DNA of 63,605 bases, the filler included, from Reticulomyxa filosa (taxonomy: Eukaryota > Protista > Foraminifera), in the NCBI GenBank assembly GCA_000512085.1. It is 18 parts of 18 records of this genome, joined end to end, with 100 filler letters (N's around TTAATTAATTAA, not from the genome) between each part and the next. Parts side by side here need not be neighbours in the genome. Positions count along the whole stretch, not along the records: positions 46,785 to 52,778 come from ASPP01008371.1; 17 more parts are not named here. The stretch is one strand, 5' to 3'. The translations under genes and the position numbers were made by a program. Shown here one piece after another: positions 46,637-52,760 of the stretch. The notes beneath the pieces were generated by a model. That model ran no database searches. It was given only the letters and a program-made list of their open reading frames with translations, and was not told the DNA's origin. The stretch's first letter is position 1; every line of letters starts with the position of its first letter.

Positions 46637-47013
46637 TTATTTTGCATTTCTCGTCTTACAAACTCAAACGATTGAAATTACACANNNNNNNNNNNNNNNN
46701 NNNNNNNNNNNNNNNNNNNNNNNNNNNNTTAATTAATTAANNNNNNNNNNNNNNNNNNNNNNNNNNNNNNNNNNNNNNNNNNNNAAAAAAAAAAACACAG
46801 CAGATTTATCATGATAAACTGAGACATTCTAATAAAAAGTAAAACAAATAGTAAAAATAAAATCTAAAACCTTTCAAAAATTCAAAAAAAATTAAAACAA
46901 GATAAAAATGACTAATTGAATCTATTGTGCGTTTCAAGTATTTGAAATAAAAGGATTCAATCTAAAAAATTCTCAAATGAATTACTTACTTACTGTTTGC
47001 TAAAAAAAAGCTT

Positions 47014-49617
47014 TTATACAAGCTTTCTTTGCTGAAATGAAATGTCATAATCAATAGTGTCTTGACTTTCCACACAATACCATTCTCCACCTCCTTTTTT
47101 CTTAATATCTTCTCGAATTTCCCTTAACATCTGGCTCAAGGGATAACCAATCTTGTATTTTGAAACAACCGTATTTTTCACGCTTTCACTAAATAATGAC
47201 AAATCACCTACTTGATAGCCTTTTGTTGTTGACCATATCATTAAAAATCCATTGTCATTATGTATATTGTTTTGTTCTTTTCCTTGCTTTCCTTTTTTTT
47301 GAGTACTACTTGTACTTTGAGGAACATTACTACCACGACAGACATCAATAATAAATATCTTAGGACTATCCTTCAAAGATTCCATTTCATGAGAATTAAA
47401 TGAAGAGCGTATTTTATCTATTGATACATATTTTCCATCACTCGTTACTAATACATCTCCTTCATCACCATGTCCTGAAATTATCATTATCAGTGCATCG
47501 TACTGGTTTTTATTTTTGTGAAGCTTATGATTAAAAACCAATTCAGCCAAAAATTCATTCACATCATCTTTGTTCATCTTGGACTCTTCATTGTATACAA
47601 ATTCATAATGCAATTCTTGTTCAAATATATATTTAAAATTATTGATATCAATATCTTTGGCACTTTCGAGATTGGGCCATTTATTGTTGTCTTCATATTC
47701 ACTAATGGCAATCATTACCACCAATGCATTTTTTATTGCTTTTGTTTTTCCAATAACTAATGGTTGTTGCAATGGATTCCAAAGTATTTTAAATGTAGGT
47801 TCATTATTTTCAAACTCTCTCTTCACAGCTTCATCTGACTCAATAATATTATCTTTCATATTAATCAATTCAAGCTTTAAATGTTTATCTCTCATTTTTT
47901 GGAAATGTTTCAATTCTAAACAATTGTGACTTTGACGGAGAAGTTCTTCAAATGTCAATATTTTCATTTTGATTAATTTTTTACTCTCATCGATTATCAC
48001 ATAAGCTTTGAACTATATTATATTTCATAAAATCAAATCAAAAATAAGATTTATACATTATTACTTAACTTCTTCTTCTTCTTTGCTGTCTTGATTGGTC
48101 TATTTATCAAATAACACAAATGCAAATATCAACATGCATCGCTATAATAAGCTAAAAAAATCTAACAAAGGCAAGAAAAGCTTCAATGGAAAAACGAATA
48201 GAAGTGATATCATCTTTTGCGATTTCACATTTCCATTTACATTCATTCAATAACCATACCCCAAATTGTTCATTTGACATTGTTTTAAACTTTCCAATTA
48301 TCTCAGTTTTATCTTTTTGTTCTCTTTTATTCCACCATTCCATCCATGTTTTGTTTTTTTCCTATTTTTATTTTTTTTGTTTAACATATATATTATTAAT
48401 TTATTAATCGAAAATGAATTTTTATTTTCCAGTTACAAAGCATGCCCAACATTGGTATCTTTTTTCATTTTGTTTTGTTGTTCGTCTTTCTCTTTTTTTA
48501 CTATTTTGTCTATTTCATTTTCCTTCTTTTCTTTTTCTTTTTCCACTTTCAATTCAATTCTATTTTTCCTTTCTTCTTCATTCAGCCATTGATTCACCTC
48601 AGTTTTCATGTGTGTTGAGCTGCTTTGTTCCCCATTCAATCCTCCGATAATATGTGCATACGTGTTGTCTTCACTCAATATTGCAACACAATCATATAAT
48701 GGACTGAGTAAAGTGTTTTGAAATGTCATCCATTTATTTTCTCGAATTGAATACTTGTGCACCAATTTCGAAACGCCATTGCCATCTCCGCCAAAGAACA
48801 ACATGACATCATTGACATACACATATGCATATTTACATAATGGTGCAATATCATCACAAACAGGTAATTTATGATATCGAAAAGTATTGTTGTCTTCATC
48901 ATATTTAATTAATAATCCTGTTTGTTGATGAAACAGAAACATTTGAAAATTGTGTTTATTTTTTTCTTTATTTGTTTTCATCATCATTTCTTGTCCTTGT
49001 CTACTTTCTGACTTTGATACAAAGCAATGATAAAATATTACATATATCGAAATCGGTAAAGCATCGCCTTTGATAAATTGAAATGTACTTAAATCAAACA
49101 CACTAATATTATTTGGATAATAAGTGATAAACAACAAATGATTTTTGCTTCCACCAATCAATGCACGCACTCCTACATAATCATCTTCATCTCTTCCAAT
49201 AATAATTGGATAATTGTGATTGTCTGTGAAAGGAACCCATTTATTGTAATTACTTGATTTGCTTGCTTTATTCACTTCATTGTCATTGTTGTCATTACTC
49301 CACACACTCACATATTTCATCACCAATGTATGCTTTTTTATACACGAAGATCCGCCAAAAGACAACAAAGTAATTTGGTTGCTGTCTTTGTTGTTATCTA
49401 CTAGCTTCACTACACAGTGCCCATTTAATGCGATATCACTTGGATACTCACATATAAACTTGTATTCGTTTTTGAGTGTATTATAAGAATAGCAACATCT
49501 TTTCCCTCGACCGCCACAAACGAGGAGTTCATGTTTGTATTGCACACATTGAGATTGATCAAGTGGGGTAGGCAAATCCTTCAAACCTTGAAAAAGAGCT
49601 GTGCTCTGATTACCCAT
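47014..49617 (-). CDS. Kelch-propeller / caspase-family (C14) protease fusion, complete ~796 aa; exons 49617-48451, 48361-48167, 48099-48070, 48012-47014
   Basis: Three phase-0 GT-AG introns give one open frame. N-terminal Kelch repeats; C-terminal caspase fold (NALVVMIAISEY, catalytic IISGHG and KIFIIDVCRG, p10-like GFLMIWSTTKGY...SLF). Confidence 0.85.
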
Positions 49618-51243
49618 GTCGCTAATATTACTGATTTTTTTTTTTAGTGTTTTTAACTCTTTTTTTTAAAAAAAAGGAAGCGTGACAACCTTTCGAAAAA
49701 AAAAAAATCTAACAAAAAAAAGGTACGTTACATGGACGTTTTTTGTTTGGTTAATCAAACAAAAAGACTTCACATAATTTGAATAAAAACTAATCTGGTC
49801 ACGTAGTAATAAAATTAATTAAACTTTCTGTCGCATAGTAATACAAGATGGCAACATCAAACTAATAAGCAGAAATAATTATTTGCTGAAAGTATCCATC
49901 ATGTAACTATCCTTGAAGTGTTAAATGGAACTTATTTGTGCAAAAAAAAATGAAAATAGGGATAAAAGTAATTAAGGCCAAAGCTCAGCAATTAAATTTT
50001 GAAAGTAGCTTAATGATAAAATATAACTTTGTCGTCATATAATGTGCGATTTTTCATGTTTGGAAAAAGGATAATAATAGATTTTTAATCTAATGGCAAA
50101 CATAATGATAATTGATTGCCTTGTGATCGAAGCAAGTTGAACATAGAAGATCGAAAACACTAACAAATTTTTGTTTATATACCTCTTCATAGCTCAACAA
50201 TTTCTCGGTTTAAACTTGTAAATCTGTTCACTTAAACACTACTATATCAAGATCAAGATAAGATTAATTATCTCTGGTCAACAATACCTATTAAAACAAA
50301 TCAACGAAGAGATAATGTTTTCATACTGAGTAAAGCTTTGGCCAAAAAAAAAACCCAAAAGGAAAACACTAAAAAAAGTTCTGCAACTGGTTCTTGAACT
50401 GGAAAATATTTGCATGAATACAAGATTTATGAGTATTTTATTTTATAATTCTTTTCCACAATATTGAACGCATAAAATTGCAACATGAACACATTTAAAA
50501 AAATAGATTTATAGAATTGGATGGTGGCAAAATTAAGGGAGTTATTGAATCAATATATATTAGCAAAAAATAAAGAAGATATTGAAAGCTGTTCGCAATT
50601 ATTAAGTAATAGTTATTTTCCATTTGACAAAGAACTGCAAGAAAAGAATAAAATCAAAATATTCCAAAAAATTTGAACGATATTCATCAGGAAATAGCAT
50701 TAAATGATCGATACAATGTGATGTAATTGAGCCAATATTTTTGAACTAATTTCATGCAGCAATCTAAATTGTGTACATAGATATCAGAATTGAAATAGCA
50801 ATTTCGTTGACTTTGGTAATGGAAAGAAAAAATTTTCTTCAAAGTGACGACAAAAAATTTATACAGCAGTGGTTGATTCAACAGCTTTTAATGGTAAAAG
50901 GAATTATCTATCACTAACAGGATCATTTTTGGCATAATTAAAAAAAAGATGTTTGCGCAAATCATTAGCCAAAATGTTGGACACGTTGACAAAGCCAAAA
51001 TCAAAATTTGTCTATTTCAGACATAGACAAATATGATATTGTATTTTATTATTCAAGCCAAAATAATAGTTTACATCTTTTTTAAGTGAAAAGATGTACT
51101 TTATGTGAATTTATTTTATGCTATCAGAATTTTTTTGGTTTGTTAAAAAAAACACTTCAATAATTTGCTTTTGTGCTCCGTTCTTTTTGGGCAAGAATCA
51201 ATGCAAAAAAAAAGCAAGACAAGCAAAAAGCATTTCATTTGTT

Positions 51244-52760
51244 TTATGATCTCCAAATTCGGATTTTACAATCTCTAGAACCTGACACAATTATATTTCC
51301 ATTTCGTGAAACGTCCACACATGTCACAAAATGGTAATGTCCTTTCAACGTTTGTAGTTCTATTCCTGAGTCTACATTCCACAATCGAATTGTATTATCA
51401 TTTGAACATGATACAATAAATTTACCATCTGGAAAATATTTTACATCGTTCACATGACCCGAATGTCCTTTTAATGTCTTCCATTCTCTTTCTGTTTCGA
51501 TATTCCATATTCGAATTGTTTTATCCAATGAACATGACACAATACATTTGCCATCTGGAGAAAATTTTGTACGTGTTACACGATTAGAATGATCTTTAAA
51601 TTGTTTTAATGTTTCACCAGATTTTATATCCCACAGACTGATTGTTTTATCATTTGATGATATAACCATTTTACCATCCGGTGAAAATTGTGTATTCAAT
51701 GTATCTTTTGAATATTTTGATATTTGTTTCATTTCTATTCCAGAATGTACATCCCATATTTGTATTGTATTATCTTGAAAAACCGATATAATATACTCTC
51801 CATTAGGAGAAAATTCTAGGTCCAATATCTTGAAATCTCTTTTAAATTTCATTACTTTAATTCCTGTGCTAACACTCCATAATCGAATTGTCCCATCACT
51901 TGAATATGAAACGACAGTATGTCCATCTGGTGAAAATCTTGCAGCAATGACCCGATCGGTATGTCCTCTGAAAATTTGAAGTTGTTTCCCCGATGCAATA
52001 TCCCATATTCGAACAGTATTATCATCTGATGCCGAAACAATCTTGGGGCTATCTGCTGAAAACCTTACACTATTCACTGTACTGCTATGCCCTTGTAAGA
52101 CCATTAATAATTCAAAACCTCGTATCTATTTAAAAATGAGAATCACAAAATAACAATCGTTTATATGTAAAAAAAAAAAATAACACTATTTAACATATTT
52201 GATAATAATTTTGCTAAAGTCATTGATCCATCCTAATTTTATCTTTGAAATTCGAATCCAATGTTGTATGACAATTGTTAGTTCATGTTTCGACTGGTCA
52301 CACATTATAAAATGTATTTGTGTTTAATCAAAAAAACAATATAATAATTCTGAAAAGAATATTACCAACTGTAGGACATCCATCAATGCATTCACTTTTG
52401 TTTTCACATGCGTTGATACTATACTATTTTTATCATCAGTTCCCCCAATAATATGTATATAAGTACTGTCTTCATTCAATATCCCAGAACACTTATACAA
52501 TGGAATGGGCAAAGTGTGTTTAAATGTGACCCATTCTCTTTCTTGAATTGAATATCTGTGCACTAATTTTGAGACAGCTGATTTATTATTACTAAACCCA
52601 CCAAAGAATAAGATATTATTATTGACATACACATATCCATAGTAATGATATTGTGAAATATCGTTACAAACAAATAGTTTATGAAATTGAAAATAGTTGT
52701 TATTTTCATCATATTCAATTGATAGTCCTGTCTTTCTGCAAAACAACAACATTTCATAAA
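51244..52760 (-). CDS. Kelch + HW/GW linker + WD40 protein, 5' truncated; exons ...-52366, 52293-52195, 52125-51244
   Basis: Kelch half (ILFFGG, IHIIGG), linker exon SKHELTIVIQHWIRISKIKLGWINDFSKIIIKY and seven WD40 repeats; phase-0 introns in frame. Confidence 0.85.

Follow-up and report, generated by a model that had tools for sequence, protein, structure and literature searches.

A Kelch propeller and a caspase-fold protease with a paracaspase-like pocket, very likely encoded by one gene of the foraminifer Reticulomyxa filosa

Proteases with the caspase fold are described as animal caspases (MEROPS C14A; caspase-3, -8 and -9), as the paracaspase MALT1 and as metacaspases and orthocaspases, and fusions of C14 proteases with WD40 or TPR repeats are also known from prokaryotes. 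In caspase-3 the P1 aspartate is held by R64, Q161 and R207. In a published comparison of structures, the positions of Q161 and R207 have been equated with D462 and E500 of MALT1, which hold a P1 arginine, and D365 of MALT1 lies slightly further along helix 1 than R64 of caspase-3 (PMC4626109). Caspase homologues of the freshwater naked foraminifer Reticulomyxa filosa have been treated as sister to the animal caspases (PMC5982838, PMC10565124, PMC10959488); in PMC5982838 specificity, pocket and aspartate are not mentioned, and the term "domain architecture" is used only for AIF proteins. In the literature searched, no paper was found that pairs Reticulomyxa with Kelch, and no functional description of the R. 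filosa paralogues treated below. Here, a locus of this organism is described that very likely encodes a single protein of 796 amino acids (aa), in which a Kelch propeller is joined to a caspase-fold protease. The analysed window is the whole stretch of 63,605 nucleotides (nt, filler included), along which the positions are counted. The locus corresponds to the contig ASPP01008371.1 (assembly GCA_000512085.1; 5,994 bp, 29% G+C), which is contained in the window as a whole and in reverse.

The gene model comprises four phase-0 exons on the minus strand, from a start ATG at 49617 to the stop codon TAA at 47016-47014. Each exon was free of stops on translation, and the lengths add up to the full chain (389 + 65 + 10 + 332 = 796 aa). 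The chain was analysed by parts, and separate exons and the protein P0001, which comprises exons 2-4, were used for searches and folding. The features are as follows:

48451..49617, minus strand: exon 1, 389 codons in an open frame, with the MGNQST start, the Kelch propeller and the charged coiled-coil helix
~49593-48598, minus strand: Kelch propeller (aa 9-340), six-bladed according to the AlphaFold2 model and Foldseek
~48579-48451, minus strand: charged coiled-coil helix (aa 347-389) at the end of exon 1
48362..48450, minus strand: intron 1, 89 nt, GTTGGG...AAATAG, phase 0, its GTT aligned with four paralogue donors
48167..48361, minus strand: exon 2, 65 codons in an open frame, Trp-rich helical domain with four main helices
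48100..48166, minus strand: intron 2, 67 nt, GTTAGA...AATAG, phase 0, annotated in RFI_11496
48070..48099, minus strand: exon 3, a micro-exon of 30 nt for the acidic linker TNQDSKEEEE, with homologous linkers in paralogues
48013..48069, minus strand: intron 3, 57 nt, GTTAAG...ATATAG, phase 0
48012-47014, minus strand: exon 4, 332 codons and the stop, encoding a beta-grasp domain and then the protease
47773..48012, minus strand: beta-grasp domain in the first part of exon 4, most like PB1 by fold match
47017..47751, minus strand: caspase-fold protease domain, by PF00656 match and fold match
47472-47470, minus strand: codon of the catalytic His in the SGHG motif
47340-47338, minus strand: codon of the catalytic Cys in the DVCRG motif
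~47316-47266, minus strand: disordered intersubunit linker with QKKGKQGK, between strands 4 and 5
47014..47016, minus strand: stop codon TAA after the C-terminus ...FQQRKLV, where the paralogues also end

An open reading frame (ORF) of about 796 aa from four exons had been proposed in the original prediction, in the order MGNQST, Kelch, coiled coil, Trp-rich domain, adaptor of ~75 aa and C14 protease. This order was found to be correct, the adaptor being ~80 aa long here, and the junctions were placed by comparison with paralogues. In GenBank, three genes are annotated on the contig instead, namely a Kelch tail with WD40 repeats, a Kelch protein of 430 aa (RFI_11497) and a caspase of 450 aa (RFI_11496). 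The Kelch exon matched RFI_11497 and the caspase exon matched RFI_11496, both at 100%. The annotated Kelch gene ends at stop 48433 and the caspase gene starts at Met 48343. This stop (48433-48435) lies within intron 1, which GenBank reads as an intergenic spacer, and the in-frame TAG directly before exon 2 is the acceptor of the same intron. Exons 2-4 with their two introns are part of the existing annotation, so that the question was confined to the first junction, which joins 48451 to 48361.

For the comparison of introns, four paralogues with fused annotated models were mapped onto their own contigs. All four have a phase-0 intron that lies 5-9 codons ahead of the Trp motif (KW.KWW), and when the five genes were aligned as DNA, the donor GTT was invariant and in register; in the gene described here it reads AAT/GTTGGG at 48450. 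With its 89 nt, intron 1 compares with 60-148 nt for the mapped paralogue introns. Exon 2 encodes EKNKTW upstream of the annotated Met, and the sequence KTWMEWW fits the family motif KKWxKWW. Because EKNKTW belongs to this motif, the annotated start of the caspase gene cuts a conserved domain. Two other first donors were tried and rejected. GTAACT at the stop codon is in phase 2 and no acceptor restored the frame, and ATA/GTAAAA further upstream is in phase 0 but is not a GTT donor and is not aligned with the paralogue donors.

Fused Kelch and Peptidase_C14 proteins are annotated elsewhere in the same genome, including P0052 (RFI_21820, 781 aa), P0054, P0057 and others. A search with P0052 retrieved 82 long family members, of which about 17 (at least 17) combine Kelch with C14 and about 30 Kelch with WD40. 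P0052 and the proteins named "caspase-3" (P0301) and "caspase-8" (P0302) have the complete architecture and are 57-72% identical in parts; they were deposited as single gene models with automatic annotations, while the locus described here was split. Kelch repeats followed by C14 are also found in Bolivina argentea (P0109, EukProt). In addition, an environmental contig (JGI 3300030740, Ga0265460_10006982; 2,268 bp, 32% G+C) contains an uninterrupted Kelch and C14 ORF of 731 aa, which is 41% identical to the R. filosa gene over the matched C-terminal part and lacks the Trp-rich and PB1-like domains. Taken together, the comparison of sequences makes a single-chain fusion, encoded by one gene of 796 aa, very likely. 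The idea that the Kelch and C14 architecture was an unrecognized one had to be given up, in view of at least 17 annotated R. filosa proteins and further examples in other foraminifera; the architecture is uncharacterized rather than unseen, deposited in the databases and undescribed in the literature searched.

The outer ends of both GenBank models were compared with the paralogues as well. RFI_11497 has a 5' extension of 36 codons (49618-50057) that has no counterpart in the paralogues, most of which start with M-[G/S/A]-N-[Q/R] in their models. RFI_11496 has an extra low-complexity 3' exon of 50 aa (46809-47019), which is absent from the paralogues and replaces the ...FQQRKLV end that matches them. 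Judged from these alignments, both models look over-extended. At 49618-49650 of the window it was observed that over-long paralogue models read through a conserved ...NI[N/S][N/D]M, which directly precedes the start codon typical of the family. Paralogues thus have a conserved 5' flank in common, which fits a recent amplification. A further observation concerned the introns of the family, which are 57-148 nt long and in phase 0. Nearly all donors are GTT and not the usual GTA or GTG, and the acceptors are AG, mostly ATAG. This unusual donor consensus may be behind the split gene models in the annotation. The locus also flags systematic gene splitting in the sole annotation of the R. filosa genome.

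The protease domain matched Peptidase_C14 (PF00656) with an E value of 1.8e-22 (80.6 bits versus a cut-off of 21.4). The His of SGHG and the Cys of DVCRG had been predicted to be intact, and it was verified that both align with the catalytic His and Cys of caspase-3; among the family members the His was present in 62/68 and the Cys in 60/68. Animal caspases gave the best matches in sequence (caspase-3, E 2e-8) and in fold (Z 26-27 over ~225 residues). All 60 PDB sequence matches listed were caspase chains, 59 of them caspase-3. In the fold comparison with VIA-align, Z was 27.4 for caspase-3, 26.5 for caspase-9, 25.9 for caspase-8, 21.4 for MALT1, which ranked below seven caspase entries, and 13-18 for metacaspases. 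The nearest clusters of the protease in the ESM Atlas were also all animal caspases. The His/Cys dyad, the xxCRG pentapeptide, the layout of large subunit, linker and small subunit and the disorder of the linker are shared with the animal caspases. In contrast, the S1 pocket of the R. filosa protein is acidic and not built from Arg/Gln/Arg, the motif around the Cys is DVCRG and not QACRG, and the N-terminal part has no CARD or DED and consists of the PB1-like domain, the Trp-rich domain, the coiled coil and the Kelch propeller instead.

With MALT1 the protein shares acidic residues (Asp/Glu) at two S1 positions (D462, E500), and in both cases a caspase-fold protease is combined with oligomerization modules and is presumably activated by induced proximity. 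Modules of the TRAF type are also found, as zf-TRAF in the paralogue P0040 and as MATH in the foraminiferal relative P0159. The fold match to MALT1 is, however, weaker than that to the caspases (21.4 versus 27.4), and a death domain and Ig domains of the MALT1 type were not found by Pfam; the model has the helical and the beta-grasp domain instead. Metacaspases and orthocaspases resemble the protein in the DxC motif and in the expected preference for a basic P1 residue, and TPR repeats are fused to C14 in the R. filosa proteins P0055 and P0311. They differ in their lower fold similarity and in having CHSG where the R. filosa protease has CRG. The protease groups with the animal caspases by sequence and fold, and only the pocket is paracaspase-like. 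The original prediction of a metacaspase or paracaspase pattern thus survived in part: the acidic S1 and the absence of the S1 arginines were upheld and cleavage after Arg or Lys still stands as a prediction, while the term paracaspase-like does not extend to the lineage.

In the HMMER alignment, R64, Q161 and R207 of caspase-3 correspond to Glu, Asp and Asp. The position of Q161 is occupied by Asp in 64/68 and that of R207 by Asp in 45/68 family sequences. The two residues of the R. filosa protease (Asp292 and Asp339 in P0001 numbering) are at the positions of D462 and E500 of MALT1, and the role of MALT1 D365 might be taken by K-[D/E]-x-D, a motif that is conserved where helix 1 begins. The disordered stretch between strands 4 and 5 (predicted local distance difference test, pLDDT, < 50) corresponds to the intersubunit linker of caspases. 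The dipeptide [KR]G was present in 50 of 63 linkers, compared with 19 expected from shuffling and a maximum of 31 in 1,000 shuffles. The acidic pocket positions and the [KR]G of the linker lead to the prediction of cleavage after basic residues and of self-processing at a basic site, and from the aligned sequences we infer that the protease cuts after Arg or Lys rather than after Asp.

The Pfam Kelch families stayed below their gathering scores on the N-terminal half (E 7e-6; best 26 bits versus a cut-off of 50; Kelch_6 19.1 versus 25.3), and the paralogues carry precomputed Kelch matches. An AlphaFold model was built from 92 sequences (pLDDT 90.8; predicted template modelling score 0.88) and contained 24 strands, after which comes a single long helix (residues 347-388). 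The best 50 Foldseek matches were all Kelch-type propellers, including KLHDC10, LZTR1, NS1-BP and KLHDC2/3, with E values down to 4e-13. A GG doublet that closes strand B was read from the sequence in blades 1, 2, 5 and 6, and by motif and strand order the N-terminal FQGLKDLP is strand D of blade 6, which closes the ring. The model thus presents the N-terminal half as a six-bladed Kelch propeller.

A search with the Kelch part gave 355 matches at E <= 0.001; the 120 listed were all from R. filosa and 54-68% identical. Variability was determined as per-position entropy across 90 R. filosa Kelch paralogues. The mean entropy was 0.81 bits in the strands, 1.17 in the A-B loops, 1.10 in the C-D loops, 1.50 in the D-A loops and 2.46 in the B-C loops. 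The value for the B-C loops compares with 1.28 bits for all other loops together (Mann-Whitney p = 4e-7, a test that is indicative only, as the paralogues share descent). Among the 25 positions with the highest variability, 13 belong to the 29 B-C loop positions and nearly all others to D-A loops. The scaffold is thus conserved across hundreds of paralogues, and variability is highest on the face made up of the B-C and D-A loops. In Kelch domains such as those in the KEAP1 and KLHL structures, these loops form the ligand-binding face. Of all the findings, this one speaks most strongly for the sensor role in the original prediction.

Between the propeller and the protease, the structural models place three further parts: the coiled coil, the Trp-rich helical domain and the beta-grasp domain that resembles PB1. 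The model of P0001 residues 1-400 had a pLDDT of 91. Residues 1-64 form four main helices with conserved Trp (pLDDT 88-97). This domain had no match in Pfam, and in the PDB a search by profile yielded no more than a spurious match of 23 residues to the peptide hormone GIP. An assignment as SAM was tried and rejected, as the language-model score of 0.84 was below the meaningful level and hhalign against foraminiferal SAM domains gave a probability of 0.1%. It was also observed that P0052 contains the Trp-rich domain twice, each copy on its own symmetrical phase-0 exon (L002 1559-2068), i.e. a clean exon duplication.

Residues 67-149 of P0001 form the beta-grasp, and its five best fold matches were all PB1 domains (VIA-align Z 7.7-8.3), namely MEKK3 (8.3; root mean square deviation 2.2, 72 aa), MEK5/MEKK2 (8.1), Par6/PKC-iota (8.0), Bem1 (7.8) and the p62 filament (7.7). 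The sequence did not match PB1 (PF00564) in any of 26 family members at E up to 10, and the family profile found no PB1 domain in the PDB. When compared with the PB1 domains of p62, Par6, MEKK3 and Bem1, the family motif IIESDExV is similar to their acidic OPCA stretch; the Lys of strand 1 is present in this copy (FKAY) and is not conserved in the paralogues. With moderate confidence, which is derived from the structural model, the beta-grasp domain is regarded as PB1-like. This points to polymerization and not to an adaptor of the death-fold type. An adaptor of about 75 aa had been foreseen and is present as this ~80-aa domain.

The N-terminal MGNQST of this copy fits the consensus for N-myristoylation, which asks for Gly after the Met and for Ser or Thr at position 6, and the GenBank start lies 36 codons upstream. 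Residue 2 was scored in 105 paralogues and was Ser in 47, Gly in 38 (36%) and Ala in 11. As Gly2 is present in only 38/105, myristoylation cannot be family-wide. The membrane tethering that had been proposed on the basis of this motif therefore looks weak.

The confidently mapped introns of the family are all in phase 0 and lie at domain borders. The Kelch head is joined either to WD40 repeats or to the tail of PB1-like domain and caspase, and this tail in turn is found with heads of the Kelch, TPR (P0055, P0311) or zf-TRAF (P0040) type. P0093 combines an Hsp70 head with a PB1-like segment, and its model stops at the contig edge before any protease. On the comparison of these domain orders, the gene is part of an exon-shuffled repertoire. 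Related C14 proteins of other foraminifera (Nonionella stella and Bolivina argentea; EukProt P0159, P0171, P0153, P0087 and P0109) carry MATH+SAM, SAM, RGS and protein kinase, GGACT or Kelch, so that domain shuffling around the protease is foraminifer-wide. Next to the gene, at 51244-52752 on the minus strand, lies a paralogous Kelch head that is cut by the contig edge and is followed by a very regular WD40 propeller of seven repeats (a 455-aa model in GenBank). WD40 genes also adjoin Kelch-caspase paralogues on two other contigs (L002 3518-4886; end of L003), which hints at a clustering of the family.

The account that we consider probable as a whole is that of one gene for a modular Kelch and caspase-fold protease of 796 aa with the following mode of action. 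A ligand on the variable face of the propeller, or clustering via the coiled coil and the PB1-like domain, would gather protease domains. Proximity would then activate the gathered proteases, in the way that death-fold filaments activate initiator caspases and MALT1. The enzyme would then cleave after Arg or Lys rather than Asp, with the two conserved S1 Asp at the positions of MALT1 D462/E500, and self-processing would probably take place at the [KR]-G that is conserved in the linker between the subunits. Of the chain of sensor, adaptor and protease that had been predicted, the fusion in a single chain is very likely, recognition by the Kelch propeller is plausible in view of its variable B-C/D-A face, and the tether to the membrane is the weak part.

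Several points weigh against this account. The junctions are those of the comparison with paralogues, and a search for a transcript-derived copy of the gene, made with the full-length paralogue P0052, gave proteins from genome annotations only. All fused R. filosa models come from one genome annotation, the same one that splits this locus, and the donor GTTGGG departs after GTT from the paralogue donors (GTTAA/GTTAG). As the paralogues share descent, the conservation counts are not independent. The Trp-rich domain is without a match in Pfam or the PDB, including the failed hhalign comparison with SAM. The PB1 assignment lacks sequence support, and a Z of about 8 is the level at which the tool warns of a common arrangement. 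In the pocket, the position of R64 is Glu in this protein but is not conserved (Pro in 32/68, Lys in 10/68 and Glu in 7/68). Furthermore, WD40 repeats are found fused to the same type of Kelch head and are possible sensors themselves, and this weakens a simple scheme in which Kelch senses and the protease acts.

Three other explanations were weighed against these data. If the GenBank models are correct, two separate genes would encode a Kelch and coiled-coil protein (~394-430 aa, ending at stop 48433) and a protein with the helical domain, the PB1-like domain and the caspase (starting at Met 48343), and both products might act together in trans. The separate NCBI models RFI_11497 and RFI_11496 speak for this, as do the many family members that are annotated as Kelch-only proteins of 340-400 aa and the donor GTTGGG, which is less typical than those of the paralogues. 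However, many of the Kelch-only models may be split likewise, and the two models are just 89 nt apart. The annotated Met splits a conserved motif, whose upstream residues are encoded up to the acceptor, the donor corresponds in position to four annotated donors that are homologous to it, and fused products are known from paralogues and from other foraminifera. Two genes are therefore regarded as very unlikely. That the locus is an unexpressed or decaying copy without a function of its own would be in line with a repetitive and fast-amplifying family that is very large and has many database members that are fragments or lack catalytic residues (the Cys is absent in 8/68 and the His in 6/68 aligned sequences). 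Against such a decay, all four frames are open over 2.4 kb, neither catalytic residue has been lost, and the splice signals are retained together with the conserved core of each domain, which makes it scarcely probable.

The third explanation concerns the enzyme and not the gene model, i.e. a true Asp-specific caspase that runs an apoptosis-like death programme. The closest sequences and folds are indeed those of animal caspases, and the R. filosa proteins were placed as sister to them by Klim et al. 2018 (PMC5982838). But the residues that hold a P1 Asp, R64, Q161 and R207, are aligned with Glu, Asp and Asp, the Asp at the latter two positions is conserved family-wide and matches the Arg-binding residues of MALT1, and the linker conserves [KR]G and not an Asp site. 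An Asp-specific enzyme is thus highly improbable, and the reading as one modular protease that cleaves after basic residues is preferred.

The variable-faced Kelch head, the swappable tails and the hundreds of copies form a pattern of the kind known from immune or allorecognition repertoires. One may speculate on a role in the sensing of non-self or damage, in defence, in allorecognition or in a controlled sacrifice of cytoplasm in the giant multinucleate cell. The far-reaching idea that foraminifera have a large repertoire of single-chain "sensor-polymeriser-protease" receptors, which belong to the caspase clade, cut after Arg or Lys, are activated in a PB1-type and not a death-fold manner, are aimed by a hypervariable Kelch face and serve innate immunity or self/non-self recognition in giant syncytial cells, is unlikely to hold in this complete form. 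If it were true, foraminifera would have arrived independently, outside animals, at a logic like that of inflammasomes or MALT1. The caspase homologues of R. filosa have been used in the literature as evidence for an ancient "caspase" and as outgroups for trees of animal caspases. If the pocket is specific for basic residues and the activation modules are PB1-like and not of the death-fold type, these proteins would have to be read differently, as a lineage in which the caspase scaffold is combined with a paracaspase-like chemistry and its own logic of activation. This bears on the evolution of substrate specificity and of proximity-induced activation in this protease clan, and the family would offer an entry point into cell-autonomous defence or the control of cell death in Rhizaria, where almost nothing is known about either.

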